A DNA stretch of 64,000 nt, taken from assembly GCA_051294905.1 (NCBI GenBank), contig CM119376.1, positions 372,001-436,000 on the forward strand, in the 5' to 3' direction. Shown here one piece after another: positions 15,330-45,020 of the stretch. The notes under the pieces are model-generated. The model had not been told where the DNA came from and ran no database searches. It was given only the letters and a program-made list of their open reading frames with translations. The stretch's first letter is position 1; the number at the start of each line of letters is the position of its first letter. Origin of the DNA: Botryllus schlosseri (taxonomy: Eukaryota). The translations under genes were made by a program, and so were the position numbers.

Positions 15330-16937
15330 TTTCTTTTTCTTTGTCTTTATTCTCGCTTTGTTTCTATCCCCTCGTCATTCTTGCCCTTCTTTCTGTGTTA
15401 CTACCGCGGTTTTGCCGTCCGCAATCTGCTTAGTAGTTTCGCACATGCTGGACATTCCCTCAGTCCTGTTTGATCTTGTTTTAATCTGGCTGTGTTACCA
15501 CATCCCACGCACAGTTGACATGCTCCCCTTGCACACTGCACAGTTTCTTATTTCTCCCTGGACAGGTTTTCTTCCGGCGTATACCATCGCCCCTTCCCTG
15601 CAACATGCCTTGAAGAGGTAGTGCTTTTTATTGCATGCAAGGCATGCGCTATAATGTGACTTCTTGTCATCTATCACTTTTGCGCTGCAATCTGCAGATG
15701 GGAACTCCAGTACGTCTTCCCAATCAGGTAAGGTCAGAGTTTGGTTGTCCCATTCTCCTATCCTGTTTGGTTGTCCCATTCTCCTATCCTGTTTGCTTCA
15801 GAGTCTATACTTTCTTCTTCTGATCTGCTTCTGCTGCTACTTTTTATCTACTTTTTATCGACGGCTTGGTATCGTTCTCCGTAGTTCCCGATTCATTGCT
15901 CTTTCTACTAATGAATTGGCTTTCTCCACTCGTTTCTACGTGCATTATCTGTGACGTCAAGTGAACAACTGATTCCTCAGCCGCACCCTGATTTTCTTCC
16001 GTTACACTGATTTTCGTTAGAGCGGGGTTGCTCTACCAGCTGTTCGACTTCTCTCCCATATATGGGCGCCTTGTATTCATCCGCTCTTCCGTTCTGCTTT
16101 GCTTCGGTCTTTTTCTAGTTTTGTGCCGCGCCCATCTCTACAACGCCCTCTCGCGGTGCATCGATGAAGATCAGTCTTCTTGCCAAGCTGCTTTCTCCTT
16201 TCGCGTTGTTTTGGTCCAAGTGTCTCTGCATATTTGCTTGTATCGGTGTGGATTGTAATTTCCACACTGCGTGTGCCCATCCTCTCATGGCTCTGTTCAT
16301 TGGATTTGGCTGCTTCTGCGGTTTTGTCATTTTTTGGTCACATAGTTTCGCAATATGACCCGGTCTTCCACAGTGTGCACATGTGGCTATATGTCCTCTG
16401 CCTGACTGCGATTTTCGTCCCCTCAATGTAGATGTGGGATTTGATGGGGTGTTCTTCCAGAGCTTTCTTCTCGATCAGTATACTGCGTACTCCATTTTTA
16501 TATCCCATATTGTCTCTTTGTTCGAAGATACTTTTGATGGGTCCGTGATTTTCTTTGAAATAATCTTCTATTTTACTGTTTTCCATACGTATCGGTACCC
16601 AGCTAAGGTACACCGCCACAGTTTCTGCTATGTATAACCAGTTAGAGCGGAGATCTGCGCCCTCTTTTTTCTTTTGCACCATGGTTCTATCTGCTTGGAT
16701 TGCAAGTCTCCTTTCTCTGAACGTTATGTCTATCTGTCCACTTGGGTATTTGATCAACCCTTCTATTTCTTCTTTGTCTATTCCGGCTCTCTCGAAGAAC
16801 GTCAGGAGCTCCTCTTTTTCCGGTATAAATCCCATTTTAACTCCCATGTCGCATGTTCTGTCGACATTCGATATAGATCCCGCCTTATTGGCGTACGTTG
16901 TTTCTTCCATTTTCCTTTTCTTCGACTATTCAACTAG
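15330..16937 (-). mobile_element. Tx1 element E3 (ORF1 only; ORF2 deleted)
   Basis: ORF 16338-16910 (TYANKAG...DRTCDMGVK, GQIDITF) homologous to ORF 44051-44731; knuckle CAHCGRPGHIAKLC; Cys-rich C-terminal block at 15495-15779. Confidence 0.75.
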
Positions 16938-16960
16938 TTGGCGCCTCCCTTTCCAAGGCC
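16938..16960 (-). other. H4: Histone H4 coding remnant, codons G9-K16 (GLGKGGAK)
   Basis: Minus strand reads GGC CTT GGA AAG GGA GGC GCC AA, exactly between the 3' end of E4 and the 5' end of E3. Confidence 0.75.
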
Positions 16961-19883
16961 TACATTTGTTAGGGGTTGCTACATCTCAAAATGTACCTGT
17001 CAGAGATATCTCTCTGGCCTGTAGCAGTTTGGGAGGTTGCTCTTTTTTCTGTTCTTTAGATTTCTTCCAGTACTTGGTCGAGAATTTCTTCCAGTACTTG
17101 GTCGAGAATTTCTTCCGCCCTCGGTTGGTGTTCTTGCCTTCTTCTTCGTCTCAGTCTTCTTGTACATGACCTCAAAAGCCAAATATGTGTTATTTGTTTA
17201 CCCTCGTGCTTTTTAAGGTTTCTCGCATCCCATGTGGTCTGTTTGAGCGTCGATATAATCTTGATGTAGGCAAGGAGTTCGTCCTGTGTCATTGGAGTTG
17301 CTGGGTCCATGTTGATGATTTCTTGAAGGCCTGGCCGCGCTGCTGCTCGCCCCTTGACTTGATTCCATGCGTCTGTAAATACAAATATCATTGGTTTGAT
17401 CTTATCGAATACTGTTCGTGGTATTCGATATCTGTTTCGCATAGCGGGCAGTCTCTTGTTCTGGAGGCCAGTGTCGCTTGCAGTTTTTCATTTGTGGGGA
17501 GCAGTCTATTGGCTATGTCCCAATTTAGCTTCCTCTGCTCGTGCGTGAGGTAGGTGTTATCGATTTTGTTTTTCCCATACCTTCTCATGGAGAGAGCTAG
17601 CTGGTTTTCCAGCCTTCTCTCCTATTCTGATTCCGGTTTTGCTTCTTTTTGCAGATATTTCAGCGCTGGCTTCATGAACGCGAGGTCAGTCATGGTCGGA
17701 ATGTCGATCAAGTCCAGTCCACCCATTCCCTTGGTCTGTATAAGCTTCTCGTATTCAATTTGCCGTCGAGTCCCATCACGAATGCTGCCGTTTCTATTTC
17801 AAGCTTCTTCTTAATGAGGGCCGGCATTCTGTCCTTCGATGCTGTGTATGTAAAAAGAGGCAAAATGTTAGTGCAAATTATGCTGACCTTTTCATGCTGA
17901 CCTTTTCATGCCTTTTTAAGTATAGGGCTCTCCACTCATTGAGTTTGTCGACTGTTTTGTTGATCGCTTCAGTCCATGGCTCCGTTTCAGCTTTTTCCTC
18001 GTGTGCTATGATATGGCCGAGAGCAGTTAGCTTGTTCGTCCATTGGAATTTCGTGGTGGGCTGTCTCCATCTTTTCCGTTCGAACGTTATGCCCTTCGTT
18101 TTCTCCCGATTGATCTGTAGCCCGATCGCTTTACCAAATTCCTCTATTATATCGATTGCTTTGTTGCTGTCCGCCTCTTTTGCAAGCGTCACGGTGATGT
18201 CATCCGCGTATGAGGGTGTGGCTATTTTTTCTTTCATGCCAGCGAGCTTGTAGCCTGTAATGGAGCTGTTAAGCTGCCGCAAGAGCGTGTCCGTTACTAT
18301 AGTAAATAAATACATAGAGATAGGATCGCCCTGTTTAATACCTTCCCGTATTTTGATGCTTTCACCAATTGAGCCGCCTATGGATATGGTTGCTTCCCCA
18401 TTTTCGTATATTGCTCGGTAAAAACTCCGGAAGTTGTCGCCCAGGCCAGCCGCTTTCAGCGCTTGATGTAGGAATTGGTGGTCGATTGTGTCGTACGCCT
18501 TGCGAAAGTCTATTGAGATGATGGCCCCTTGATTTCGCTCTCGCATTTCTGCCGCAATTTCCCTTAAAACAAGGTTGAAATTGTCCATGTTATTCGGTGG
18601 GTTTACGTACTGATGGTGGTGCGTAATTTGTGGCAGGGCCTTTTTCAATCTGTTCGTCAGAATTTTGCTGATGATCTTGTAATCCACATTGAGCAGAGTG
18701 ATTGGGCGGTAGTTTTTCATTTCCTTATCGTCACCTTTCTTGTGGATGGTCTTTATTATTCCAATTGCAAATTTGCTGGTGGCGGTGTGCTGTTTTGCTG
18801 GTGGCGGTGTGCTGTAAGTAGAGTTCGTTGAAAACCAAGGTTAGATTTTTCGCTATTAGGTCTAGAGCTTGTATGTAGAACTCGGCACCTATGCCGTCTT
18901 TCCCGGGTGTTTGATTTCGTTTTTGCTGGAGTATGGCTAGTCTCACTTCATCTTCCGTGATGGGCCGATCTATCTCTTCCCGCTGGCTTTGCGTTAGCCG
19001 TCCAGCTTGCGATCTGAAAAAGGAGTCAGCAATATTGGGATCTGAGCTTTTCTTACTGTATAGATTTTCGTAGTATTCTTCTGCAGTCTTTCGGATCTGT
19101 GGTGATGTCGCCGGCCGCGTTTCTGATTGCACTGATTGAGGCTACCTCCTGCCGTTTCTTGATGGCCTCGCATAGCATGTATGGTTTTTGGCTTAGCGTT
19201 TCTTCCGCCTCGGCTTTTGCTTCCTTCTGGAGTTTTTGGATGTTCCCCTCCTTGTTTTTCCATATTTTCTTTTTCACCCTTCTGTATTCAGGCAAAAGAG
19301 CAATGTTACAGAGAACACGGTTTCTTACTGTTTTTAATTCTTTATCATCTTCTTTTTGTCGCTTCTTTTGTTGCCTTCGCTCCCTTGCGACATATTGAAT
19401 GTTCAGATGCTTCAGCCTTCGCTTCGGTTTCCCACGCTTTCCATTTGTTTTCTAGCTCCCTCCGGAACGTCTCTTGCTTGTAAATGTCGGTGTTGTTTTT
19501 CCAGATCGTTCGTTTCGTATCGTGTTGCTGTCCCATCTTCACTGTGGCAACGGTCGCGTCATGATCTGTAAAGGCACAAGGGACATTACAGTTTACCGTT
19601 TGGATGCTTGGCGTGGTGTAGATTCTGTCGAGCCGTGATTTGCCTGCGTTGTAAAAGAAGGTGTATTCCTTTTGGTTACCGTTGGCTTTTCTAAACGTAT
19701 CCTCGACCCCCATTGTCTTCATTGCGTTCGCGTGGCGGTTAGCTTCTTCTCTTCTCTGGTCGACGGGTTGCCGATCGAGTTCACAGGAATCCACGCCGTT
19801 GAAGTCTCCCGCTATGATTTAGTGTTTTGTACCCCTCGCCCTTGTGGCAAGCTGTCGCAGCTGCATTCTTCTTTTGAACCTGT

Positions 19884-20306
19884 TGTTTTGACGAGTCATG
19901 TTTTAGTTACTGTCCTTTATTTTCATTCCGTTATTCTCCTCGACAGCTCCATGAATATTCTACTCGACAACTCCTAATTGTTTTGTTTCATTTAATGATT
20001 GGTTGATTGAATTGTTGCATCGTCCGTTTTCGTTTACCTTTATATTGCTCTGTTGCTGCTATTTCTTTCTCCATTCAACTGTTATCGGACGAGCAAGCAA
20101 TCTTGCGAATCTCGCCATTTAACGTATCAATATTCTGAACAAGCTATTCCGTATTGTATGTTTTGGACTACTTGTATTTGAAACAGAAGAGATTTGAGAT
20201 ACGCAACGCTTGCTTAGTACCAAGATTGCCAGATTTAGTGTGCAGCAGACAGGATCCCGACACCTGATAAAGCGCCACTCATTGATTTCAGTGCCGCGTC
20301 GGAACA
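19884..20306 (+). repeat. 5' LTR of BEL/Pao element
   Basis: tgttttgacgag...gcgtcggaaca, repeated at 22499-22921. Confidence 0.95.
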
Positions 20307-20323
20307 ATTCGCAAGATTGCTTG
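20307..20323 (+). promoter_or_regulatory. Putative self-priming primer-binding site
   Basis: attcgcaagattgcttg starts at the first base after the 5' LTR, lacks TGG, and is the exact reverse complement of LTR bases 20094-20110. Confidence 0.7.
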
Positions 20324-20471
20324 TTAAAGCCGATATCTTCGAGACGCTCTTCGATTCAGGCGCCGCATGGTATTACTCTATATTCAAGACTCTGCTGCGC
20401 TACGAAGATCGATCGACTCTGCTTGGCACTAAATCTGCTACATTTACATAGTTGTTGTATTCAATTGAACG

Positions 20472-22451
20472 ATGTCGTTTGTGAAGTCTCCATCGGAATC
20501 TCCCAAGTCTCCAACCTTGGCACCGACTTGGAAGCCATTAGCTAAGATGACGGTCGACGATTTACGACCCGAATTACAAGAACTTGGCGAAGCTACAAGT
20601 GGGAGCGAAGCTGTATTGACGGACCGATTAGGGAAAATCCTAGATTCCGACAAACCTTCACAAAAGAAAGAACCAAAGCCCTCTCCATTGAGCACCACCG
20701 AGAGTACATCATCTGAACTGGTTATGCTTTTTCAGATGATGAAGCATCAGCTAGATCTCGATCGGCAGCAGCAGCAATTAGATCGCGAAGCTTCTGACCG
20801 TAAGTTTCAGTTGCAGCTCGAGGAGATCAAGCAGAAGCACGCTCAAGACCGTGAAGAATCCGAAAGACGATTCAGACTGCAATTAGAAGAAATTCGACAG
20901 CAGTCCGATAACCATTCATCGGCAAGCAGGGGACATTCACGTCTACACGAGGTTGTTATAAAGAAGTTCAGGCGCATGAATGCTGACCTCTTAGAGTCTT
21001 TGCAAGCTCTGGAGAAGAAACACGCACATTCCACCTCCGTCGAAGAAATTAAGGTCTTCATACGGTCGGTAGAAATATCAATGACCGATCTCAAGGCATT
21101 CGTGGATTCAAAAGTCGACCAGCTTGACGATGGTGATTTCAAGACCGAAATCATTGATGGCATGAGAAGATCAAAAGAAATTTATTTTGTACATATTCCT
21201 CTTGCCAAATCCAAGTCTTCATCGCTGAAAGCTGCCGAAGAAGCGGAAAAAGCCGCTGGATCCCTCCCGAGTGGAATAGTGCCGCCTACATTCAATGGCG
21301 ATATTTTGACTTTTCCTGCATTTTGGGAGTCGTTCGAGCCATTGGTTCACAAAAATCCAAAGGTCAGTCCATTTTACAAAATCTCGTATTTAAAGGCAGC
21401 TCTTAAAGGTTCGTCATCCGGCCTTCTCAATGGTTTCCCCTCGGCGGCAGTGAATTATGAGCCTGCAGTAGAAGCCGTTCTTAAAAGGTACGGAAAGAAG
21501 CAAGCGATCGTGAGAAATCACATCGAAGACTTACTACAAGGTGAGAAAGTAGAATTTAAGATCGACAAAGTCAGACAACTTCTCGATGCCGCTACTGCTA
21601 AAAGGGCCATTTTATCGCAGTATGACGTCTCTTGGGACCAACTCTTTACACAGGTACTAGAGTCCCAGTTGCCTGGTACGTTGCATGAGCGTTGGATCAG
21701 AAAAACTAGCCCCTTGATCGAAGCCGATAAGATTCCTGATTCTGATCTCCTGTTTGAGTTTCTAAGAACCGAGTTGGCGACGATGGAATCGTTGCGTAAG
21801 TCGCAGAATGGGCGTTGCGCTGTTGACGTACGTGAAAAGCCCCCACATAAAGATGAGCTGGTTAGTGTTGGTACCGATAAACCTGACAATGCATTTTCTG
21901 CCCAGTCTCTCGTGATTCAATCCGTCCAGCTATCATGCACCTACTGCTCAAAACCTCATTTATTGAAAGATTGTTTTAAATTTCTGAAATTAAATCCCGC
22001 CCAGCGATTGGCTGACTTGGTTATGAAGCCTGGTAAAGTGTGTTTTAGATGCTTATCCCCGAAAGGACACAAACACCACCCGAAACACTTTCATCAATGC
22101 AAGGAGCGTTGTACCGTCACTGGTTGTGGGAAAACCCACCACAAATTGTTACACGTTTCTGCGGAGCCATCGATCGGTTCCAAGTGTATGGTAACAACTA
22201 TTGACGGTTCCACCTCTGCATTGCGGGATTCAAATTCAAACGCATTATTGCCTACTGCGTCGGGACGTATCAACCACAATGGTGATGGTAAACCGGTTAG
22301 AATCGCGTTTGACTCATTTTCCCAGAAGAGCTTTGTAACTCGTGATCTAGCTGATTCATTGAAGCTATCACCGATTAAAAGCGATTGTCTCGGCATTAGC
22401 GGGTTCGGCGGTAATTCTAAATCTATTCGTTCGTCTTTTGAAGTTGGGTAG
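20472..22451 (+). CDS. gag: BEL/Pao Gag with N-terminal SAP-like motif, capsid-like (DUF1759-type) region, Cys/His knuckles and truncated aspartic protease
   Basis: Uninterrupted 659 aa: MTVDDLRPELQELGEATSGSEAVLTDRL; PPTFNGDILTFPAFWESF; CTYCSKPHLLKDC, CFRCLSPKGH, CTVTGCGKTHHKLLH; RIAFDSFSQKSFVT...ISGFGG. Confidence 0.9.
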   Translation: MSFVKSPSESPKSPTLAPTWKPLAKMTVDDLRPELQELGEATSGSEAVLTDRLGKILDSDKPSQKKEPKPSPLSTTESTSSELVMLFQMMKHQLDLDRQQQQLDREASDRKFQLQLEEIKQKHAQDREESERRFRLQLEEIRQQSDNHSSASRGHSRLHEVVIKKFRRMNADLLESLQALEKKHAHSTSVEEIKVFIRSVEISMTDLKAFVDSKVDQLDDGDFKTEIIDGMRRSKEIYFVHIPLAKSKSSSLKAAEEAEKAAGSLPSGIVPPTFNGDILTFPAFWESFEPLVHKNPKVSPFYKISYLKAALKGSSSGLLNGFPSAAVNYEPAVEAVLKRYGKKQAIVRNHIEDLLQGEKVEFKIDKVRQLLDAATAKRAILSQYDVSWDQLFTQVLESQLPGTLHERWIRKTSPLIEADKIPDSDLLFEFLRTELATMESLRKSQNGRCAVDVREKPPHKDELVSVGTDKPDNAFSAQSLVIQSVQLSCTYCSKPHLLKDCFKFLKLNPAQRLADLVMKPGKVCFRCLSPKGHKHHPKHFHQCKERCTVTGCGKTHHKLLHVSAEPSIGSKCMVTTIDGSTSALRDSNSNALLPTASGRINHNGDGKPVRIAFDSFSQKSFVTRDLADSLKLSPIKSDCLGISGFGGNSKSIRSSFEVG

Positions 22452-22498
22452 ATTATGAAAGAGTCTGTTGACCGATCATAGTCGGTCAAGTGGGGGAG

Positions 22499-22921
22499 TG
22501 TTTTGACGAGTCATGTTTTAGTTACTGTCCTTTATTTTCATTCCGTTATTCTCCTCGACAGCTCCATGAATATTCTACTCGACAACTCCTAATTGTTTTG
22601 TTTCATTTAATGATTGGTTGATTGAATTGTTGCATCGTCCGTTTTCGTTTACCTTTATATTGCTCTGTTGCTGCTATTTCTTTCTCCATTCAACTGTTAT
22701 CGGACGAGCAAGCAATCTTGCGAATCTCGCCATTTAACGTATCAATATTCTGAACAAGCTATTCCGTATTGTATGTTTTGGACTACTTGTATTTGAAACA
22801 GAAGAGATTTGAGATACGCAACGCTTGCTTAGTACCAAGATTGCCAGATTTAGTGTGCAGCAGACAGGATCCCGACACCTGATAAAGCGCCACTCATTGA
22901 TTTCAGTGCCGCGTCGGAACA
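22499..22921 (+). repeat. 3' LTR of BEL/Pao element
   Basis: Follows the PPT; followed by TSD cctgt. Confidence 0.95.
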
Positions 22922-23025
22922 CCTGTTGTTATGCCCATAGTATGAGGTTATATCTATTTTCTGGGCACCTACTTGCACTCTTAGCTGTATCATTCTCCCC
23001 TCCGTGTCATTCGTTACGTTCAGTG

Positions 23026-23859
23026 TGTGGCAGCCGTGCTCTATACTGCCCCTTACGTCAGTTGTAGTATTATCGCATCGTGCTTTAACTCCCTCTTTAG
23101 CTTCTGGCCGCTTCGGCGGACAGACGTATTATAAAGTCTCTGCAGCAGTTGTTGAATCGTGTGTGATCAACTACAGACGGGGGTCTGTTACAATGGCGAG
23201 CACGCTAAAAGCGTTACTTCATTAATTTGGCTGCAAGTCTGAAGATTTCTGGACAGTAACGGTATGCTGAAAGTTGGCGGAAATTCGAATACGGAATTGG
23301 CTGTCTGAACCGATTAAAGAAGCAGTATTGCATCGATGTGAGAAGTTTGAAGACTTGACTGGTTGCTTCACTTCGTAATAACTGTTTCACTGGCGGAACT
23401 GATGTGAGCGCACGTGGAGGGATGGAGCTTGTGACTCTCCCGGCCCGATGTTATGAAGAGGGGATGGAGCATGTGACTCTCCCGGTGATGTGGCGCGGCG
23501 TTGTTAGGGTTTTAGTTTAGGGAATTGTTCATTAATGTTAGTTTAGGGTTAGTGTTCTGCTAATGTGATACGGTCATGCGGGTGTTTGTGATTTTGTTGA
23601 TGATTTTGGACTTGTCGTTTTGATGTTGCTGTTTTTTATTGTATTTTGTGAGAGTGCTTTTATAGGCACTTCTCAAGTTTGGTGGGGAATAGTGTGGCAG
23701 CTGTGCTCTATACTGCCCCTTACGTCAGCTGTAGTATTATCGCATCGTGCTTTAACTTCCTCTTTAGCTTCTGGCCGCTTCGGCGGACAGACGTATTATC
23801 AAGTCTCTGCAGCAGTTGTTGAATCGTGTGTGATCAACTACAGACGGGGGTCTGTTACA
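23026..23859 (+). mobile_element. TRIM-like miniature LTR retrotransposon (non-coding)
   Basis: 167-bp LTRs at 23026-23192 and 23693-23859 (TGTGGCAG...CTGTTACA, 4 differences); PBS TGGCGAGC at 23194; PPT ggtggggaatag; 4-bp TSD agtg. Confidence 0.85.
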
Positions 23860-26800
23860 AGTGTACGAATTGCTTTTTTATTCCTTGCGCTGAGCAGAAT
23901 TGCGGTTCCCGCTGTGACGTGGTCTTGTGAGTTGCAATGTGACTCTCCCGGCCATTCTTTTGCCCAACTATCTATCCTCTTTTTCTAGTGTAGAGTGCGT
24001 TTCCTGCAGGCCCGTGATATTTGCACCTGTCTTTTTAATAAAGTCATATATTACTTGGCGTTTCCGCCTGTCCCCCATCCCGTTGACGTTAAGCGTCAAG
24101 ATCCTAAATTCCCCATTAGCCATTCCCTATCTATGGTACCTCACTAGTTATCTTTTCTTTTTGCTTTTGGCTTCCTACATATTCGGCACTTCTTGTATAG
24201 CCTTGCCGTCGCTTCGTTAAACAGCGCTCCGCAGCAGTCGGTGATTATACACGCCCTGTTGCATATCCCGCAGCTGATGGAGTGTCCTCGTTTTAGCGCT
24301 TCTCCCGTGATAATTAGGACTTCTTTCTCATCGCAGCATGACTGTATAAATTGATGTTCAATATTACAGATCATACATGTGCATACCTTGGATTCTGCTG
24401 TGTAGGATGTGCTGTGTATGATGTAGGGTGATTCCGAGTTTTCAAGAATTTTAAATTTAATTTTCTTAGCTATTTTCAGTTCCGAGTTGAATTTTCTTGT
24501 TTATGTAGAATATTTCCATATTCTATTCTAGGTACTTAACTAACTATATTCGAGTTTCTATAAAATTCCTATATGTTATGGATTCGAAATTCCGTCTATA
24601 TATATTGGCTTTCCTGGCATTTATGGTGACTGGTCAAATTTGGGTGAAATTCTCCTAACTCTGGTATCGTATTTGGCCGGGTTTTGGGGAGGGAATGGGG
24701 GGGGGTAGAGGGGTCTGGGCGATTGGGTTGGTTGTTTGGGTGGGGTAGGGGAAATTGTTTATTCATCAAAAGTGCGGCTTAATAAAGTGTTATACATCTA
24801 AATCGACGTGCAAAAGTGAAGTGAGGATACAGAATAAATTAATTAACAATTTATACGTCATGAGTAAGTAGAAATATATCCGGTTATGGATTCGTACATC
24901 TCAATATATACGGCATATAGGCTGTATATCGCGTATATAAGTATACAGGTATTGGTTTCGCGTACGTTAATTTGATAGATTAATGTGGTACGTAGGTGTT
25001 TTCAAAAGGCAATGCGAATACAGTAATGATTCATAATTTTGCGTAATGCATATTAATCTATCGCGCGCTTGCGTATCATCGATCGGTCTTTCGCGTTTCT
25101 TCTGAGTCTTCTCCTCTTCTGTCGGCTTTCATGATATCATCAACGGTACGGTATCGCGCAGAGTTGTATTAATGCGGATATTAAACGGGAGAGCTTATGC
25201 TTATTGCATACGCATAATACCTATCGCGCGCCGCATGCGTTACGAGAGTTCGCGTTCTCTTCGTCATTTATCCGGTGTCCCAGGATCGTCGCCTCGTGGG
25301 TTGTAGTTTGGTTCTTATTCGATTGATGTTCTCGTTGACGTCATCGGCATATTCCTTATGAATATCAAGCGCTTGTTTCCATTCCCACATATGTAGTTTC
25401 ATCTGCATGAAGGTGGGGAGTACCGTCGTTCTATGCGGTCCATCGTATTGGTTTTTCATGATCTGCCCTGGTGTCGCGTTGATGTCGGTTCGGAATTCAT
25501 CTTCGAGGTCAGACCTGATGATATAAAACAGTTTTTTGTATATTGTACATTCCTCGAAGATGTGCTGCATATTGTCGGTTTTGTTTTTGCAAAATTTTCA
25601 GTCATTTTTTAGTTGCTGTGCGTTTCGGGTCGTCCAGCCGGCGTCGATCTTTCTCGCCCCTGAAAAATAGTCTTCCGAGTTGATACGATATGATATAACT
25701 CTCTGTCTGTTATTAATGTAGTGTTTTATATCATTTTCGTACAACCATATCGTTTTCCACGCAGCTGCATCCTGGTCGCCATAATTTGTTTTCTTATTGA
25801 GGAGTTGTTGGTAGGTCTCCCGTTGGCTTAGTTCTTCTGGGGGGGGGGGTATCGTCGAGTTGTTGCAGCGATTCATAGGCTCTTTTTTCCTCCAGCCAGT
25901 TCTCGGTTGGTTTGTATCTGTGGGGATATGAATTATTGTAGAGCTTGTGAGTTATTGCTCTCACCTTGGTGCCCAAGTTGTAAATCGCATCCGCATGCCA
26001 GGCCTCGGTTGGTGCGTCGATTTTCGCAAGTTCTTGCATCCTTTTGGTTTTCCTTGATGCAATGGTAGATTCAATATCAAGAAACGCGATGCCTTCATAT
26101 TCGATAGGTTTTATGAGTGTCGCTCTTGATTTTTGCTCCAGTTTTTCAGGGTGCCACAGGATCCCGTAGATGGCCCTTTCCATCTGCTTTAGGTATTCGC
26201 TGGTGACCTGAAGGTTGAGGTATGCATAAGTTATTTTGCTTATAATGTAGGATTTGATTGCTTTGATTTTTCCGATCCATGTAAGTTTCTTTGACTTTAT
26301 AAGGCCCGCACTCTCCTTTATATCCTTGATCAGTGTCTCGTGGTTTTTCTCTAGGTCATTTTCGCCGTGATATTTTCCCAATATCTTTATTGTTTTTGTC
26401 ATCATATTTGCATAAATCGAGTTTTCAAGCATCGTTCTAGATCTCTGGTTGAGGGGAATGATTCCGGTTTTTTGCAAGTTTATATCCTGTCCTGTTACTT
26501 GATAATGGGTGCGATATTCGCTCAGTACTTCTTTGGCGGCGTTAATTGACCCCAAATATAGGGTCACGTCGTCCGCGAATTGGTCAATCTTTTGGGTAAT
26601 GGCCCCGATTTTTAGGCCTTTAATTTTGTCGTTTGCAGCGATTCGTTTTGACAAGGGGTCTGCGCTTATCGCATATAGGGACATGCTGTGTGGGCACCCC
26701 TGCCGAATTCCCCTGGTACAGTTGATTTTACCAATTTCGAGCCCATTTACTTCTATAACGGCGGTCGGTCTATCATAGATCTTTTTGATAGCATTCAGCG

Positions 26801-27206
26801 TTGACCTTGCAAGGGGAAGTCTCTCCAAGATTGATATGAGCATCTCTTGGCTTTTTCGGCGTCTATAGCCATTATATAGGCTTCACTGTTCTTTTCGCTA
26901 TAGTGCCTTTTGATTGAATCAATGTTATTGTGGATGGTATTCATAAACCTTCCAGGTAGTCCGGCCTTTTGGGCTTGGCTAATGTGATCGTTCACCTCGT
27001 TCGTTAGTCTTACATTCAATATTTTGGCCATAATTTTATAATCGGTATTCAAGATCGAAAGGGGTCGCCAATTCTCAATTTTAGATTTTTCTTTTTCTTT
27101 ATGAATTAGGATGGTTTTCGCTGAATTCCAGCTTTCCGGCATATGGCCAAACATTATGGCGTTGTTAATAAGGAGTGTAAGCGTCCTACCGATTTGTTTC
27201 CAGAAA

Positions 27207-28550
27207 TTAACATAGAATTCGAACGTGAGGCCGTCTCTTCCTGGTTTTTTTTTCCTTCTTCACACTCTTGAGGGTTTGTAGCACCTCTTCTTGGTCAATC
27301 GGACTCGTTGTTGTTGTTGTTTGGTCTGGGCTTGCCGTCGCGTAGTATTCTGCGAGGTAATCGGCTTGATTGGCTTGATTGCCTTGCGCGCCTCTCGTCC
27401 ATAGTTCTGTATAGAAGGTTTTGATTCTGTTAGCTATATCGTCCTTGCTTTCGCTTACCGTCCCGTCTGGCATTTGTAGTTTTTTTTTTATCTCAACTCT
27501 TTTCTTCCTCTTTTTGAACTGATCCCAGAATTGACTCGTCGTATGCTGTTCTCCCTCAAAATCATCAAGTTTTGTTAGTACTCTTAACTTTCCTTTAATT
27601 TGTTCGTACTTGAAGTGAGGGTCTGGGTTTTGGGCTCTCTTGATTTGATAGCTTTTGCTTGTTTTGGCTATTCTTTTCTTGAGAGCATCCCACCACTCGG
27701 CAGGGGATTCATAGTTCTCAAGGTTTGGCTCCTCACTGCGTATGACATTTGTTATTATATCCCTGTATATCGGGTCCTTAAGAATGTCATTGTTGCATTT
27801 CCAGTTGCCTCTATTCCATCTTATTTCTTTTTCGAATGTAAGTGTCACTGTTGGACTTAGATGGTCTGCCACATTGTTATTTTCGATTTTAGCTTGCTTT
27901 ATTTGGTCTAGTATCTCTTTTGTTACATATATTCGGTCAATTCTGGATTTTCCGTGATTGCTCTTAAAAGTATACATCTTTGCTTTTGGATGTTTACATC
28001 GGTACGTATCTATTAGCTCAACGTCATTTTGTATCTTACTGAAGAGCTTAATGTCTCTTCGTGATTCGATTCTCTCTTTCGAGTCGGTGTCCATCGGGTC
28101 AGTTACGAAGTTGAAATCTCCGCCTAATATTATTGGAATGTCCGTGTTATCTAATTCCGATGCTATTTGGTTCAGAAACCGAATTCTTTCATTTCTTACT
28201 TGATTCGCACTCCCAGAGGGGCCATAAATGTTAAAAACCGCTATTGGGCATTGTTCAATTTGTATATAAATACATTGGGCACGGTAATCTTGGATAACGA
28301 AGTCCCGTAGGACCTTACCTTGTATCTGGTTTTTTATCATTATTGCCGTGCCGTCGTATCTTCTACGGTCGTTGGCGGCGTTCGGGTAGATAATAAATCC
28401 AATCCGTTTGCTCCATTCATATATTGCTTTTAGATCCAGTTTAGGCACTTCTTGTATTAGTAATATATCCATATTGGAGGCATAAATATATTGTTCGAGT
28501 TCGCCCAATTTTCGCAATAACCCGTTTACGTTGATTGATGCGATTTTCAT
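27207..28550 (-). CDS. E5 ORF2 apurinic-like endonuclease and linker (447-aa uninterrupted piece)
   Basis: INVNG, QE, NIYGP, GGDFN, SRIDRIY, ADH, RGNWKCNN motifs. Confidence 0.85.
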   Translation of the reverse strand: MKIASINVNGLLRKLGELEQYIYASNMDILLIQEVPKLDLKAIYEWSKRIGFIIYPNAANDRRRYDGTAIMIKNQIQGKVLRDFVIQDYRAQCIYIQIEQCPIAVFNIYGPSGSANQVRNERIRFLNQIASELDNTDIPIILGGDFNFVTDPMDTDSKERIESRRDIKLFSKIQNDVELIDTYRCKHPKAKMYTFKSNHGKSRIDRIYVTKEILDQIKQAKIENNNVADHLSPTVTLTFEKEIRWNRGNWKCNNDILKDPIYRDIITNVIRSEEPNLENYESPAEWWDALKKRIAKTSKSYQIKRAQNPDPHFKYEQIKGKLRVLTKLDDFEGEQHTTSQFWDQFKKRKKRVEIKKKLQMPDGTVSESKDDIANRIKTFYTELWTRGAQGNQANQADYLAEYYATASPDQTTTTTSPIDQEEVLQTLKSVKKEKKTRKRRPHVRILC

Positions 28551-29942
28551 CTACTTATGGCTACAGTCGATACCGAAGCATCGCTATCAGGCTACAGTCG
28601 ATACCGAAGCATCGCTATCAGAGTCTGTTGATTTGTCGTTTTTCTGTTTCTTTCGGATATCGTTTCCGTGCTGCTGTTGCTATCTCTTTGTCTCTTGTTC
28701 GGTTCGTAAGTAAGTGAGTCTGGTTCTATTATAGTTTCATTATGCTGGTCGAACGGTTCGTGTTCCGGGTCTGAGTTCGAATGTGGGCCAGATGTCCCTT
28801 GCCTGTCTTCAAGGGGTGGCGAGGCTAGCGAGTCTTCAGCAATTTTAATCTGGTCAGCTGCCCTTTTGATTTTCTTCTCCTGCCAGCAGTTTAACTTTCC
28901 TGCTTTTTGGCAGTGTTTGCGGTTTCCCCGATGTTTTGGGTAGTTTATCTGCTTTGGGTTATGCCTTGCTTTCGCGGTTGCGTAGCACTGTGATGTTTTC
29001 GTACCAACCGGTAAGTACCTCGGAGTTATGCTTATTTCTGTCGGGGCTTGGTAGCTGCTGTAGGCGTAGACTGCTCGTGACTGACAGTCTATTTCGATGG
29101 GATTGGGTTGATTGCGGCGTTGGTGGTGGCTGCCGGTCTGCTTCTGGCTCTGGTTTTTCACTTGTTCGGCACGCTCGTTTTGTTTCGGGCAGTTTCTTGC
29201 AACGTGTTTTTCGTCGTTGCAAAGATAGCATTTTCGTCTATATATGTCGTCCGCCGTACGTATTTGGCACGAATAGCCATCAATGTATACGTATCCCGGC
29301 ATTTTTCCTTCACGAAGGCCTCGACCCAAATGTTAGTTCTTCCGTTGTATATTCTAGTGTTTTTGCGGTACACTCTTGTCATTGCCACTACTTTTCCAAA
29401 GCCTTGGCTATCGATATCTCTTGCAATCGATTGTTGCTCCGTTTCTGTTGGAATACCGGTTGCAATTAGGTGTGTTGCTGGCGGTCTTGGTAGTTCGAGG
29501 CGGATATATTTGAAACTGTGCCCCTCAAGGCTCTGTTTTTGGATTTTGTTGTAGAGCGCATTTCTGGTTTGTGCGCCTTGTGCGTCCTTGAAGAAGGATA
29601 GGACGTACATCCCTCGTCGCATCTCCCATAGGGATTCTATCTTGTTTATGATATACTGTTTGGCGATCTCGTTGTCACATAGGTCTGCCCATACCTCTTC
29701 ATATTCGATATTTTCTGGGACCTTGAGAAACAGGGATCTCGGTCTGTGATGCTGAATAGGTGGTCTCGGGGTAGTTCTTTTCAGAGCTGTTGCGTATCCT
29801 GGTTCAGCGTTTGTATCCATATTTTGTTCCGTTTGCGTATATCCAACATGCGGGCGACGCCCGGTTAAATTCATATTTTGCTCGCTTTGCATATATCCAA
29901 CAGGTGGGCGACGCCCAAGTTCTGGCTGCTCTGAGTCTAACT

Positions 29943-31944
29943 CAGTGATTCTCAAGCGCGGCCCCCAGATAGCCTTCTTGCGGCCCCCGCGCCCCCAAAG
30001 TATATCAAGAAATCGATTTATGACAAAAATAAAATTTATATTTATAAAATACTCTTGCTTGGCTTGACCTCTGTGGTTTTTAATTATAGAATTGCAGGAA
30101 AGTTGTGAGTATGGACTGCTAACGTTATGTCACTGCTATTTCAATGCAATGTGCCCTAACTTTCCACTTGAACGAGAAGTAGCTATAGATATAAATCCAA
30201 GGAAAATCTCTCCCTCGTGGTCGCTTGACTAAAAAAGAAAAAGAGGCACAACTCCCGGAAAATACAGTTTTTCTTTCACATTAACAGGTGGTTGTCTGAA
30301 AAAATAAACTTCCCGGTCTAGCTCCGAAATAGCCGCCGTAGCGCTCCTACAGTGCTGACTTAATGTATATCAGTCGAATTTGGCCCTATATGTAACCAAA
30401 ATCATCAAAAAATGAGACAAAATCTCAAAATATAATACATTTGGGCGTCCTCCGAGGACACTTTTATAAAAATCAAAAAAGAGGACAAATCATCTTAAAA
30501 GAGGACGTATGGTAACCCTATTATAACTAGATGTGCAACACGTGACTCACGGTTGAATACGCCGCCGAGATGCATACTGTTTAGTCGGCTGAAAGCAGCA
30601 TAATTGGTAGTCCTATATTCAGGGCCGTAACTGCCGCACCCCAAACGCCCCAATTGAGGGGGGCCGAGATCGAAGGGGGCCCAAAATTATTTCGTGAATT
30701 AGCATAAATTTTAGCAAGTATTTTTTGAAAATTTGTGCAACTTCTTCAAAAATTTTTCGCGCTATGCTCGATTTCAATTCGCCGCATATCTTGATTATTG
30801 GGTACTCTTCCCCAAGAAAAAATACGCAAGATTTATAGAAATGGGCATATCAGCGTTGGCCATGACCGCACCACAACGCACCATGACATATAAAGTTTTA
30901 GGCCATGTAACATGTGACTCCAAGAAGTGTGTCAGAACGATCGGCAGCGAGAAAGCCTTGGCCGTAAACGACTGCTTTTATGCTGACCAAAAATTCCGAA
31001 ATACCAAAAACTTCGTTATATATACCAAATACATTTAGGTTTATTTGTTCATATAGCCGCCTAATGACTGGCGCCGAATGTTCTTGTCTTGGCAATCTGA
31101 ACCTCACAAGACAAATACCATCCCGCAGGAAAGAAAATTATATGCCAGTGAAGAAATACCAATCTGAAATCGTGTGATCTTCCAGTTTAGTAGGTTTGGG
31201 CAATTCTACATTTTTTGATATAGCAGACAGGATGTCACAAAATAACATCGCCATGTGAAGAAGTCAGACCTAGGGGTTTGCCCGCCCGAAGGTCTGCAGT
31301 TTCAAAGACACCTCTCACTCAGCTCTACCGGTAAATCGGATTACGTGGGCAAAGAGGACAACCATGCAATTCCCGATCTTATCATGAATTATCGAAATAT
31401 TCGCGCGTAGCGCTGTCTCAATAAACAGTACAACTTTAATTTCGTGGCAAAAGCGAACAACGTCATGCGAGGTCAGTTTATCACCCTATGGGAGCCCGGG
31501 GTCCTGACGAAGTGCCGTTACGTTCCTGCCAACGGGTATACCCTCGGATATGTTTAATTCCTATTGAGGGGGCCTATACCTTTACAAACACACCTCACTC
31601 AGCTCTACCGGTAAATCAGATTACGCGAACAGAGACAAGATGAAAATTGATAGCAATACATGCAATTCCCGATCATATTGACCAATTCAGTCATGAAACT
31701 AAAGAAATTTCTCGCGCTTTGCGCGTTTAGACGAGAAAAGCTGATTCACTCAACGGACACCCAATGCAGCAGATAAGTAGCGGTAAACAGTGTACAGTTT
31801 TGAAATCTCGCCACGGCAATAAAACTACTCAGAAATAGCCATGACTGTTTGGGTCCGTTTCATAGCCGTAGTTTTCGTGCGGCCCCGACCGTACTCTGAA
31901 ATTCTAAATTTGGCCCTCACACCGAAAAAGTTTGGGAACCACTG
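29943..31944. mobile_element. Composite non-autonomous hAT (Charlie-like) element with nested MITE pieces
   Basis: TIR CAGTGATTCTCAA/TTGGGAACCACTG; 8-bp TSD gtctaact; E5 ORF1 frame continuous across it; internal block shared with 49378-51063. Confidence 0.85.
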
Positions 31945-31984
31945 GTCTAACTGATTCAGTTCGCGCGCATTTCGAGAGAAACCA

Positions 31985-32090
31985 TTTACCGCCATTTCCC
32001 CGTCCAGACATTTTGATAATTACAGTTAATTGTTTTATTCCCTGCAACGAATGGTTTTCGCTAGTCTTTACGGCAGAATTATTTTGAAAC
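31985..32090 (-). pseudogene. H4: Histone H4 gene 5' remnant (promoter/cap region, 5' UTR, Met to K8) fused to the 5' end of E5
   Basis: ATG TCT GGA CGG GGA AAT GGC GGT AAA = MSGRGNGGK (H4 is MSGRGKGGK) at 32011-31985; CCATTCG, matching the PyCATTCPu histone cap-site consensus, at 32054-32048, about 43 nt upstream of the ATG. Confidence 0.72.
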
Positions 32091-32095
32091 AGAAA

Positions 32096-32106
32096 TTTCC
32101 CAGGCC
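32096..32106 (-). other. H4: Histone H4 coding remnant, codons G9-K12, directly after the E6 poly(A) tail
   Basis: Minus strand AAAAAAAA GGC CTG GGA AA = (K) G L G K; short, so supported mainly by agreement with the other two junctions. Confidence 0.6.
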
Positions 32107-34670
32107 TTTTTTTTAATCGTGGTTGGCCTCAGTCAACCATGGTTTATTTTTTTTATCGTGGTTGGCCTCAGTCAACCATAGTTTATTCAAAATATAATCT
32201 CAATACAAGTTATTTAAAAATTGCGTGAAAAAAGCACAAACACAAATACACAAAATCATCATTCTTGCCGGATTTCCATCGCCATGTTCGTCATCATCGT
32301 TCAACTCGTCTCGTTCGTCACCATCCATCGTCGTCAATTTGTCATCGTGTGTCCGTCGTCATCAGTAGTCCAGGTATTTTCTTCTTCGACCTTTTCAATC
32401 AAGTCGATTCTGTCGTCGTATTTCTTGAGAATTTCTTTTACAATCTTTTCCGTCCAGTGTTGTCGGTTAATCATTGAGACGTTTTCGATATCCCATTTTT
32501 GTTTTGTTCTCAGGATCGCTTTCTTAAATATCATGATAAGTATTATTTCGTTCTTATTTTTTTCTTTTGACTGTAATGACTGTAAAACAGTTCTTCTCCT
32601 CTCGGTAATTTTATACCCTTCTCTCTTTCCATCTTGCATAGGACTTCTTGCGAGAAGGGACATTTTGTGAAGACGTGTTCTATATCGTCTTCATCTTTCC
32701 CGCAAAACTTGCAAGACGTTATATCATTTCTTTTCCATAGATTTCTTCTTTTTTCTTTGCCGAATATATATCCTTTGTTATTTAGTCTGTAATTAATTAT
32801 CTTCTCTTTGTTGGTAAGTATGTTATTACGTCCTCTCTCCTCTCCTTGTAATACCTTCCACTTCTTCGTTTGACCGAATGGTGATTTTTTTCTCCACACT
32901 TTCTGTACATCTCATGTACAGGTTTTTGAAAGTGGCGGCCATCCATTGTTCGGTTGACCATCTTATTTTCTTCGTGTCTTCAACTATTCTTCACCATTCT
33001 TGATCTGGACTATCATTATGCGGCATGCTGTTTGCGTACAGTCCCGCTTTGATGGCTTTAATTTTGGTTCCTAATTGATATAAGGCTTCTTGATGCCAGA
33101 ATTCGCATGTGTTTTCTAATTCCGACAGGGCCTTGATTTTTATCAATTGGCACGTGTATACAATCGATTTTGAGAATGGCATGGCCAGTCCCCCTTCGTG
33201 TTTCCTCTTTATAAGGAGATTCCTAGCTATTAATTCCATCTTTTCTGGATAATACATTAACTGGAAGAAACTCCTCTCTATTTTTTTAATGTTTTCATTG
33301 TTAGGTCTATGCACTGGATAATACATGAACTGGAAGAAACTCCTCTCTATTTTTTTAATGTTTTCATTGTTAGGTCTATGCACTCTAGCAGTGTAGAGTA
33401 TCTGAGACGTTGCAAGGCTTTTCAGGATTTGTATTTTTCCTATCCAAGTCAGCCGTCTTGTTTTGTACATATTTAATATTTTATCGATCTTATCTATTCT
33501 TTCTTTCCATGACTCTTCGTTTTCATCTTTCCCAAACCTATATCCCAATATCTTTATACTATTTTTTGTGAAATTCTCGAATACTGAGTTTTTGAGCTCA
33601 ATTCCTGCCGCTCTTGTTAGTGGCAGTAGTTGAGTTTTTTCTTCGTTAATGCTTTGTCCCGTTGCTTTCTCAAAATCTTTCAAGTGTTTCATAATTTTAG
33701 TGAGTTTTTCGATTGCGTGAACGTCGTTAAATCGTCCTCGTATTGCTGGATTTTTAAAACTTGTTGGCCTAATCTAATTCCTCTAATTTCTTCGTCTTTT
33801 ATTATTTTCTTTGCTAATGGTTCGGTTGCCATTGCATAGAGCATCATGGGGCAGCCTTGCTTAATGCCTCTTTATTTTCACCGAGTTAGTTTTTGCTCCG
33901 TTGATTTGGATTCGACTTCTAGCGTTATTATATGTATGTTTGATATAATTGTAGAAGTTTTCTCCCAAATCCCAGGATTTTATTAGCGATAATGGGTAGT
34001 CATGATTGACTCTATCAAACGCTTTCTCCTGGTCTACGCTGCCTATCACTGCCGGTATCTCCTTCTTTCTGGAATAATCTATTGCAGATTTTAGATTAAT
34101 TGCCGCATCAAAAATGCTTCTCTTGTCGATGCTACATTTTTTAGTGTTATCTATGATATCCGGTAGTATGCTTTTCATTCTACTGGTTAGTATTTTAGAT
34201 AATATTTTGTAATCCGTATTTAATAGTGTTATCGGTCGGTAATTTTTATGTGCCTAGGATTTCCTTTCTTGTAAATTAGCTTTACTAATCCCTCTTCCAT
34301 GTTTTGCAGGTCGAATTGAAGCTGTATGCGTTGTTCATTACTTCGGTAACTTCTTTTCTTATCATGTTCCAATATGTTTTCTAGAATTCAATGGAGATCC
34401 CGTCGGTACCAGGGGATCCATTATTTTTCATCGATTTAATCACGAGCAGAATTTCATCTTCGTTATCGTGTAGTTCAGATGTGCTCGTTTTTCTTCGCTA
34501 ATTTCTATACCTTCAATTTCATTTTTGAAGGTTTCTTGTATTCTTATATCAATATTGGAGGTTTTCTCCCACAACTCATTGTAGAATTCTTCAACCTCAT
34601 CAATTATTTCTTTTTTCTCGATTAGTAGCTCTCCGTTTATATTTGTTGTTGTTGGCCTTTCCTCGAGGTA
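32107..34670 (-). mobile_element. Tx1 element E6 (intact 3' tail to linker; 5' part missing)
   Basis: Poly(A) at 32107-32114 with duplicated tail; CKFC...EHVFTKC C-terminus; RLTWIGK; QQYEDD; DQEKAFD. Confidence 0.85.
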
Positions 34671-43869: not shown

Positions 43870-45020
43870 ACTATTTTATTCAAATCCAAATTTTTTGACG
43901 GCAATAACTCCGCTTCACTGGCTGGAATTGAACCAAATTTGATGAGCCTCGTATCGATTGATTGTGAGCATTGGAGTATTTGGTTGTATTATGGTGTTTA
44001 TCATGGTAGCTTCGAAGGGCTCAAAGAAACTCGTGCAATAGATAGGCGCTATGACGGATTCACAAGGAGGTCGTCAGCCTCCAGGAACGTACGCAAATGC
44101 GGCTGGAGGATCACAGCCTGTGGACAGATCATGTGATATTGGAATTAAGCTGCCAAGGATGCCGGACAGGAAGGAATTGATAAGTTTCTTCAATACGGTG
44201 GGAATAGTCTTGGAAAATATAGAGGGAATAGTAAGATTCCCGAATGGCCAAATTGATCTCACCTTTCGAGATAGAATAATGGTAACTACAGTCGATAGAA
44301 ACATGACGAAAATGAAGAGTGTAGGGACACCTCTCCCAGTCCATTGGTTATATGTAGCCGAAAATACGGCGGTTTACTTAAGCTATGTCCCCGTTAAAAT
44401 GACTGATCAACGAATTGAACAATACCTTATGAATAAGAACTTACCGATCGAAAATATCCTTCACCAAAAAGATGACCTAGGAAAACGAAACGGAGTGAGG
44501 AGCATGCTGGTGGGGAAACACGGAGTGAGGAGCATGCTGGTGGGGAAACAACAACTCGACGAAACGCCGATCAAATCGTTCATCAACATAGACGGCTTCA
44601 GAATCACGGTCAGATACAGAGGTCAAATACATACATGCGCCGGAACCGGGACACTATATGCGCCTATGCCCCACAAGAACCAAGAAAACCATACGGCCTA
44701 CAGGAAAAGAGAGGGAAAGACGAAATTATGACGAAACAATGCAAAATAGCATGGAAGGTATGGGAATATATGACAATCCAAAATACCGCAGATACGCTAG
44801 AGGGAGACACTGAGAAACAGGAAACACCCAATACCATAAATGGAGATACGCAGGGCGAAGCGCCGAGACCAGAGGAGCACTCACCACCACGAGAGGGATG
44901 CGATGAGAGCGAGACGCCCCCGATGACGATCTTGGACACGTCGGAAGACAGCAGCCAATCAGCGCGAAGGGAAGACGCGAGAGAGCAAACGAGAGTCGAC
45001 TCTGTGTATAGAAACATATA
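43870..45020 (+). mobile_element. Inverted 5' UTR and ORF1 N-terminal half of a Tx1 element (likely the 5' part of E9)
   Basis: ORF 44051-44731 homologous to the E3 ORF1 N-terminus; only plus-strand Tx1 piece in the window. Confidence 0.75.

Follow-up and report, generated by a model that had tools for sequence, protein, structure and literature searches.

Site-specific long interspersed nuclear elements (LINEs) are thought to persist in redundant non-coding multigene families (ribosomal DNA (rDNA), small nuclear RNA (snRNA), tRNA and spliced-leader genes) or at telomeres. Within the Tx1 clade, the accessible portions of the published record place Keno in U2 snRNA genes, Mutsu in 5S rRNA genes, Dewa in tRNA repeats, and Kibi and Koshi in microsatellites (Kojima and Fujiwara 2004, as cited in PMC4640811). 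Published target lists, as far as their accessible parts go, name rRNA, snRNA, tRNA and spliced-leader genes, transposons, microsatellites and telomeres, with histone genes absent, and the searchable full-text literature, a body that leaves Repbase and Dfam outside, held no histone-targeting LINE. Here, we describe a pile of LINE-like elements interleaved with fragments of the histone H4 gene in Botryllus schlosseri (CM119376.1, contig 6, positions 372001-436000; this whole stretch of 64,000 nucleotides is referred to as the window), and we compare it with the remainder of the 495-Mb genome, which was searched for related junctions. Genome-wide, the searches support insertion of several related LINE-like families into the first ~20 codons of H4 and H3, where they pile up head to tail. 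Our main reading, to which we assign a probability of roughly 0.75, is that the pile in the window consists of L1-group (Tx1-like) LINEs and grew by repeated target-primed insertion into the sequence coding for the H4 N-terminal tail.

Histone H4 fragments at element ends in the window

The tblastn layout and Pfam matches place at least 10 elements with an apurinic endonuclease-like domain (APE) and a reverse transcriptase (RT) in the window, every one of them on the minus strand. Three H4 strings, each found once and also on the minus strand, lie at the ends of these elements. The features concerned, in window coordinates, are as follows (ORF, open reading frame; UTR, untranslated region).

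15400-16937, minus: 5′ part of E3 ('family A2'), with 5′ end CTAGTTGAATAG and ORF1 at 16338-16910 followed by a Cys-rich continuation
16938-16960, minus: H4 G9-K16 fragment GGCCTTGGAAAGGGAGGCGCCAA, 23 bp, between the 3′ end of E4 and the 5′ end of E3
16961-24527, minus: E4 ('family A' type), 5′ tagaatatgg, 3′ ..aacaaatgta, APE from ~24125, RT 17878-18720
24532-31984, minus: E5 ('family B'), ORF1 28592-29955, APE 27207-28550, RT 25794-26843 (Pfam)
31985-32011, minus: H4 M1-K8 fragment (ATG..GGTAAA, K6 changed to N), directly upstream of the E5 5′ end
32012-32095, minus: 84 nt of H4-like upstream sequence with TATA-like AAATAAT, cap-like CCATTCG and CAATTAAC, resembling a 5′ UTR and core promoter
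32096-32106, minus: H4 G9-K12 fragment GGCCTGGGAAA, 11 bp, directly after the E6 poly(A); the pattern poly(A) plus GGCCTGGGAAA spans 32096-32110
32107-32146, minus: second E6 3′ terminus with poly(A), 40 nt, read directly; other copies end at the first poly(A)
32147-34660 (upstream limit approximate), minus: E6, a 5′-truncated, poly(A)-tailed LINE, RT ~32994-34247 (tblastn)

The likelihood of such strings arising by chance was gauged by matching codon-degenerate H4 patterns to the window and to 100 shuffled versions of it. The patterns matched these sites alone, the two longer fragments having expectations of 0.01 and 0.00 per shuffled window, and neither the 23-mer nor the 27-mer appeared in any of the 100 shuffles, whether with 2-3 mismatches or as codon-degenerate patterns. 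The 11-bp G9-K12 fragment is weak by itself, with an estimated chance of ~3e-5 at one fixed junction. A search for H3 fragments in the window found none. The 5′ fragment is assigned to H4 because of the CCATTCG and CAATTAAC motifs upstream of it, since H2A of this genome begins with MSGRGKGGK as well; the motifs of the 84-nt block likewise occur upstream of intact H4 genes. The H2A genes in question (L051, L059 and L064) share their first nine residues with H4 and also carry the GGNGGNAAA motif. The loci read, a set from which the unassigned MSGRGKGGK starts at C11:7121626, C12:24865890 and C11:16931527 (contig and position) were left out, showed no H2A insertion.

The arrangement of the fragments bears on how they came to lie there. 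In size and position, the 23 bp of G9-K16 that separate E4 from E3 are what one expects of a target-site duplication, and two elements entering one site in turn, one via the G9 nick and the other via the K16 nick, would leave exactly this sequence. Specifically, the E3 5′ end (ctagttgaatag) adjoins this fragment such that its TAG falls in the H4 reading frame, and the E4 3′ end is common to 9 other genomic copies, with homology ending at 16961. As for E6, its last 354 nt are 93-96% identical in at least 8 genomic copies, all of which have their poly(A) end at window position 32147; the 40-nt E6 copy arose either by a second, extremely 5′-truncated insertion there or by tandem duplication. The 84-nt block following the G9-K12 fragment could have arrived by read-through transduction, or through a deletion that joined two neighbouring H4 genes.

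E5 carries a zinc knuckle in ORF1, and its 3′ end is fixed by a copy on contig 4. Its own 5′ leader TGGTTTCTCTCGAAA begins at 31984, is interrupted and resumes near 29960, the interruption being a nested block of ~2 kb (~29962-31950) that opens with a SINE-like (short interspersed element-like) repeat. The 5′ end of E5 is homologous to that of the element at C6:2006501 (L062, which follows H4 M1-K12) and to C4:16553179. The nested block is seemingly bounded by a short duplication (GAATCA..TTAGAC). Its SINE-like repeat (~350 bp, window ~31600-31950, minus) has more than 4000 first-look genomic candidates, and copies (L002-L030) are 94-97% identical.

The original prediction had placed the three H4 strings, in sense orientation, at real element termini, and all of this is borne out, as is its estimate that the two longer strings exceed chance. 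It had also described the pieces as complementary halves of one H4 N-terminus, which they probably are not. The G9-K16 fragment equals the H4 gene at C6:2345 in 22 of 23 bases, and the G9 fragments have the GGC-CTK-GGA codon choice of this local contig 6 gene, whereas the M1-K8 fragment matches local codon choice at only 20 of 27 bases; the two halves are therefore probably of different origin, and an excess of 5′ stubs points the same way. With respect to E5, the element does begin after an H4 stub as proposed, but ~2 kb of what had been taken as its interior (~29962-31950) is the nested block.

Insertions into H3 and H4 across the genome

The clearest insertion lies in H3. On contig 8, histone genes form a regular tandem repeat of 5.8 kb in the order H4(-), H3(+), H2A(+), one unit of which is longer by 5.07 kb owing to an element of the E3/E4 kind within H3, with a family-A ORF1 and an E4-like 3′ end. 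At the 5′ junction, the H3 promoter and coding sequence run to A21 before the element starts, reading ..CAGCTCGCT^TGAGGAG (element start TGAGGAGTATG; a caret marks a break point throughout). The 3′ junction reads ..CAAATGTA^AGCTCCCC (AGCTCCCCGAAAGCAGCTCGCT ACC..), and the rest of H3 follows up to the stop codon. When aligned with an empty unit, the occupied one proves to have a perfect 22-bp target duplication covering A15-A21, and eight sister units on the same contig present the uninterrupted empty site. Consistent with this, pattern lists give the occupied unit one extra copy of A15-A25 and zero extra copies of T3-K14.

A cluster on contig 1 holds the same family inside H3, in this case with an 18-bp duplication of R2-A7 (alignment of filled and empty units). 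The order here is H3 up to A7; then 54 nt of H4 5′ UTR, H4 M1-A15 and H3 R17-A21; then the element; then H3 from R2. This compound leader has clearly been brought in from elsewhere, and is a record of earlier stays in H3 and then in H4. The occupied unit is found twice, at C1:6165589 and C1:6186164, 20575 bp apart, and is amplified within a larger repeat of the histone cluster. In addition, coordinates place an H3 start (C12:9105333) 69 nt before a family-A ORF1. An H3 A15-A25 piece on the minus strand at C13:22932843-22932874 has no matching T3-K14 upstream, and may be a further 3′ junction at K14^A15. H3 coding sequence makes up ~1e-5 of the genome, and two of the ~4 independent close copies of family A1 fall within its first 21 codons, a location that cannot be a matter of chance.

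Turning to H4, degenerate patterns matched, genome-wide, ~15 H4 genes that are intact and about as many fragments, and at least 10 further H4/H3 5′ stubs stand directly upstream of element 5′ ends. The 5′ junctions listed below are those whose letters were read; other stubs were placed through coordinates alone, among them H4 starts 75-125 nt upstream of a family-A ORF1 at C3:33878605, C7:28551841 and C13:22186881.

After H4 K8: window E5 and C4:16551668, family B
After H4 G9: C3:6967156, a third ORF1 family
After H4 K12: C6:2006501, family B, with ORF1 58-65% identical to that of E5
After H4 A15/K16: window E3, C6:696756 and the contig 1 cluster leader, family A

A pattern joining the family-B 5′ end to the lysine codon matched exactly at two known loci only in the genome, the remaining hits being noise below the control. 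Contig 4 holds a pile comparable to that of the window, in which an H4 M1-K8 stub, a 1.5-kb insert, a family-B element, one like E6 and one like E4 succeed each other on a single strand.

Junctions at the other end of the element, in which H4 resumes at G9, comprise window E4, L093/L095 and an orphan G9-A15 fragment at C6:638529. In L093/L095, the rest of H4 runs from G9 to the stop and retains the 3′ stem-loop. These two loci (L093, C13:24199898-24202929; L095, C7:19625675-19628706) are copies, 93% identical to each other, of a unit at least 3 kb long, and since they are duplicates we count them as one tentative junction. A LINE tail upstream of their G9 junction was considered and ruled out, as an ORF for a Harbinger/PIF-type transposase (HTH_Tnp_4, DDE_Tnp_4) lies there, with H4 starting at G9 ~400 bp beyond it; the arrangement could represent an H4 that was captured, or else a LINE junction in which a DNA transposon is nested.

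Taken together, independent insertions, a target duplication and an empty site are all found (contig 8 H3), and H4 K8^G9 is recurrent, yet the position is not strictly single, as H3 A1^R2 is used as well. The claim that H4 is an insertion target with a recurring K8^G9 break is upheld by 3′ junctions (E4, L093/L095) and 5′ junctions (E5, C4:16551668, C3:6967156). H4 had, however, been put forward as the specific target; it is used, but is not the sole one, the closest relatives of E3 and E4 lying in H3 with clean duplications. A single break point at K8^G9 has to be given up, since 5′ junctions fall at K8, G9, K12 and A15/K16, in keeping with one nick after AAA and a second 12-23 bp downstream. 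The proposal that the E6 family targets H4 is not supported as stated, its H4 junction not being repeated at other E6 copies.

Insertion model and competing explanations

The two target sites are alike. The H4 site reads GGC GGT AAA ^ GGC CTT GGA AAG GGA GGC GCC AA ^ G and the H3 site GGA GGC AAA ^ GCT CCC CGA AAG CAG CTC GCT ^ ACC, such that they share GGNGGYAAA^G, GAAAG at +8 to +12 and CGC at +18 to +20, with duplications of 23 bp (H4) and 22 bp (H3). In the mechanism we propose, the endonuclease would nick the antisense strand within or just after the lysine AAA that follows GGNGGN, at H4 K8^G9 or H3 K14^A15, and the sense strand would be cut 12-23 bp downstream. Each insertion would then be flanked by a short duplication (H4 G9-K12 or G9-K16, H3 A15-A21) with the downstream target regenerated, and later elements would enter the stub of earlier ones, yielding same-orientation arrays with H4 fragments in between. 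Regeneration of the target downstream of each insertion would account for both the uniform orientation and the second, 40-nt E6 tail at 32107-32146. A nick within or after the lysine codon, rather than before it, is suggested by tails reading tgta^GGCC and tgta^AGCT, which allow at most 1-2 target A's; the GGT^AAAGGC nick of the original prediction is a misfit with such E4-type ends. For family B the stagger seems to be 12 bp (G9-K12), in agreement with the K12 junction of L062 and the 11-bp fragment after E6.

A second feature shared by these junctions is a stop codon. In-frame TAA, TAG or TGA lies within 0-2 codons after 7 of the 8 readable junctions, which between them comprise five or six different 5′ termini; the E5 leader reads TGG instead of the TAG of its relative in L062. 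Full-length copies are found directly behind a histone promoter, 5′ UTR, ATG and 8-21 codons, with the in-frame stop 5-150 nt before ORF1. In family A1, for example, H3 M1-A21 is followed by TGA, GGAGT and the ORF1 ATG, which puts 5 nt between the stop and ORF1. The stubs are homologous to intact H4 genes only as far as 10-64 nt upstream of the ATG. From the in-frame stops, the excess and extent of the stubs and the compound leader, we infer that the histone promoter would drive transcription, that ORF1 would be translated by re-initiation after a short histone-tail upstream ORF (uORF), and that chimeric RNAs would carry the histone leader to the next site (5′ transduction).

Several observations weigh against our main reading. 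Genomic copies were mostly judged by coordinates and hypothesis-driven patterns, with the letters of the flanks at hand for only some. The pattern poly(A) plus GGNYTNGGNAA is not enriched genome-wide (7 matches, compared with 11 in a reversed control), and other E6-family ends are absent among matches to poly(A) plus G9-K12, leaving the E6/H4 junction a single instance. Intact E4-like 3′ ends at C6:559968, C12:17464515, C6:700033 and C9:2244574 have no flank matching the H4 G9-A15 or H3 patterns, the E4-like 3′ end of L097 is followed by GGC and then by non-H4 sequence, and the patterns found no H4 5′ half near six intact E5 ORF1 relatives (68-74% identity; contigs 2, 5 and 10). Such histone-less 3′ ends and E5 relatives may lie within piles, may belong to sister families with other targets, or may be a sign against strict specificity. 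The closest foreign relatives (L098 and L099; 41-42% RT identity, 5′ ends cut by contig ends) showed no histone, Rfam gene or tandem repeat in their 3′ flanks. H4 3′ remainders are far rarer genome-wide than 5′ stubs, and many of the latter have therefore likely travelled as leaders rather than marking a local target. Family A has used three nick positions (H3 A1^R2, H3 K14^A15 and H4 K8^G9), so that its specificity is possibly regional rather than strict. In terms of expression, four RNA runs have zero depth over the contig 8 H3-element junction; the depth over H3 is likewise zero, and as histone reads were probably filtered out these data are uninformative on co-transcription.

Some of these points would suit other explanations. 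One is that the histone 5′ pieces are chimeric retrocopies, formed by RT template switching to abundant histone mRNA in the manner of U6-L1 chimeras, or a leader captured once and inherited, with no histone specificity at all. The surplus of at least 10 5′ stubs over H4 3′ remainders would follow naturally, as would stub homology that ends at about 5′ UTR length, a compound H4::H3 leader joined at a GGCGCC microhomology, and an L062 leader directly after the poly(A) tail of another element. This explanation fails on the 3′ junctions, namely E4^G9-K16, L093^G9-to-stop and the H3 insertions, whose duplications of 22 bp and 18 bp are perfect and whose sister units are empty. Moreover, the leader break points, which run from K8 to K16, are the duplication limits set independently by 3′ junctions, and the in-frame junction stops argue for selection on translated chimeric mRNA; we consider it quite improbable. 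Chance matches of the three fragments in AG-rich, low-complexity element ends are scarcely credible: the brevity of the 11-bp fragment and the missing poly(A) plus G9-K12 enrichment speak for chance, which is refuted for the two long fragments by the 0 of 100 shuffles that yield a 23-mer or 27-mer and by junctions that repeat at independent loci.

A preference for regions rather than sequences is also unlikely. Histone clusters or transposable element piles would in this case be favoured because the chromatin of the histone locus body is open, because of the timing of replication, or because elements enter each other's ends, with the fragments as bystanders. The three nick positions of family A are what one would expect of such a preference, as is the E4-type 5′ end (tagaatatgg..), which adjoins the 3′ end of another element at 3 of 4 loci, including L096, and these elements crowd the first 0.7 Mb of contig 6. 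All resolved junctions nevertheless fall in codons 1-21 of H3 or H4, with none in spacers, H2A, H2B or the 3′ halves of the genes; the H3 K14 and H4 K8 sites have a common motif and duplication length; and the orientation is invariably that of the histone gene. Insertion into the start of H3 and H4 remains our preferred reading.

Element classification and comparison with known systems

Pfam identifies Exo_endo_phos and RVT_1 on E5, E4 and other elements, and the best PDB sequence matches are to human L1 ORF2p (RT, 1e-27; APE plus linker over 400 residues, 2e-18), with no R1-clade endonuclease structure among the PDB matches. The ORF1b of E5 and the ORF1 of both L062 and L056 contain zf-CCHC; the family A ORF1 has no Pfam match and a Cys-rich C-terminal part. 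On these sequence matches, the combination of APE, RT and a CCHC-bearing ORF1 shows the elements to be L1-group retrotransposons without long terminal repeats (LTRs). For a predicted structure of the E4 RT (mean local confidence score, pLDDT, 90), the first Foldseek match was Xenopus Tx1 ORF2 (P14381; E 5.6e-18, template-modelling (TM) score 0.84), and its identity is 25% to Tx1 ORF2 versus 29-30% to mammalian L1 ORF2. Protein-database searches returned 3 unnamed matches or 'hypothetical protein' and no clade name. The Tx1 label given earlier is accordingly sound as to L1-group membership, which the L1 ORF2p matches support, but the Tx1 clade is not supported as stated, and we retain the modelled placement as a candidate, Tx1-like, only.

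E4 is split by an LTR element on the opposite strand (19884-22921), whose 423-bp LTRs (19884-20306 and 22499-22921) are 100% identical and which looks very young; its 659-aa ORF has a DUF1759 match and weak aspartyl-protease matches (gag-protease only). The plus strand of the window has a single ORF1-like piece (44087-44638). Related elements run past the window (C6:438785) and are dense across the first 0.7 Mb of contig 6, a region that was perhaps once a histone array and has been overrun. Distant relatives (34-47% identity) of the family-A ORF1, many of them intact, form same-strand series at 6-13 kb spacing (C10:7548949-7569044, C4:178374-196785 and C12:20957810-21054068), and may be sister families on another tandem gene family.

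A fuller reading, whose chances we regard as evenly balanced, would join these observations. An APE-type LINE lineage would be specialised on the N-terminal-tail coding sequence of replication-dependent H3 and H4, the first protein-coding target of a site-specific LINE. It would exploit the histone promoter, cap site, 5′ UTR and ATG, retain a histone-tail uORF of 8-21 residues with a stop at the element start and re-initiation at ORF1, and hop between H3 and H4 via the shared GGNGGNAAA^G. If true, the site-specific LINE strategy extends to protein-coding genes transcribed by RNA polymerase II (Pol II), with escape from the host ATG as a new problem. Such a lineage would also offer a natural endonuclease with a ~30-bp recognition site in a universally conserved gene, of interest for targeted integration tools, and a route to study how histone arrays tolerate or purge occupied units, as has been done for rDNA with R1 and R2.

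Compared with the Tx1-clade LINEs, the elements described here are alike in their APE and RT, L1-group membership, fixed orientation in a multicopy gene and short target duplication, as well as in forming several related families with shifted targets, low copy numbers and tandem piles; they differ in that the target is the coding sequence of a protein gene, histone H3 or H4. With R1 and R2 of 28S rDNA they share a tandem multigene family as host, a defined target duplication or deletion, and occupied units that accumulate and decay. R1 and R2 rely on co-transcription from the host promoter, as the elements here would. In contrast to rDNA, the host in the present case is transcribed by Pol II and translated, such that the element faces the host ATG, a problem that the stop and ORF1 arrangement apparently serves to solve; R2 further differs in having a restriction-like endonuclease instead of an APE.

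Closer in setting are SLACS, CZAR, CRE and NeSL, which likewise occupy a short, highly expressed tandem Pol II gene, insert near its 5′ end and inherit a capped leader. Those elements use a restriction-like endonuclease and a non-coding exon, whereas the elements here are of the APE type and interrupt an ORF. U6-L1 chimeras and 5′ transduction provide a parallel for host sequence that is fused to the 5′ end of an element and moved on, the compound H4::H3 leader resembling serial transduction, with the difference that the region carried here is itself the insertion target and its break points match the duplication limits. In sum, target-specific LINEs are known; what is new here is the protein-coding class of target and an apparent adaptation to its translation.

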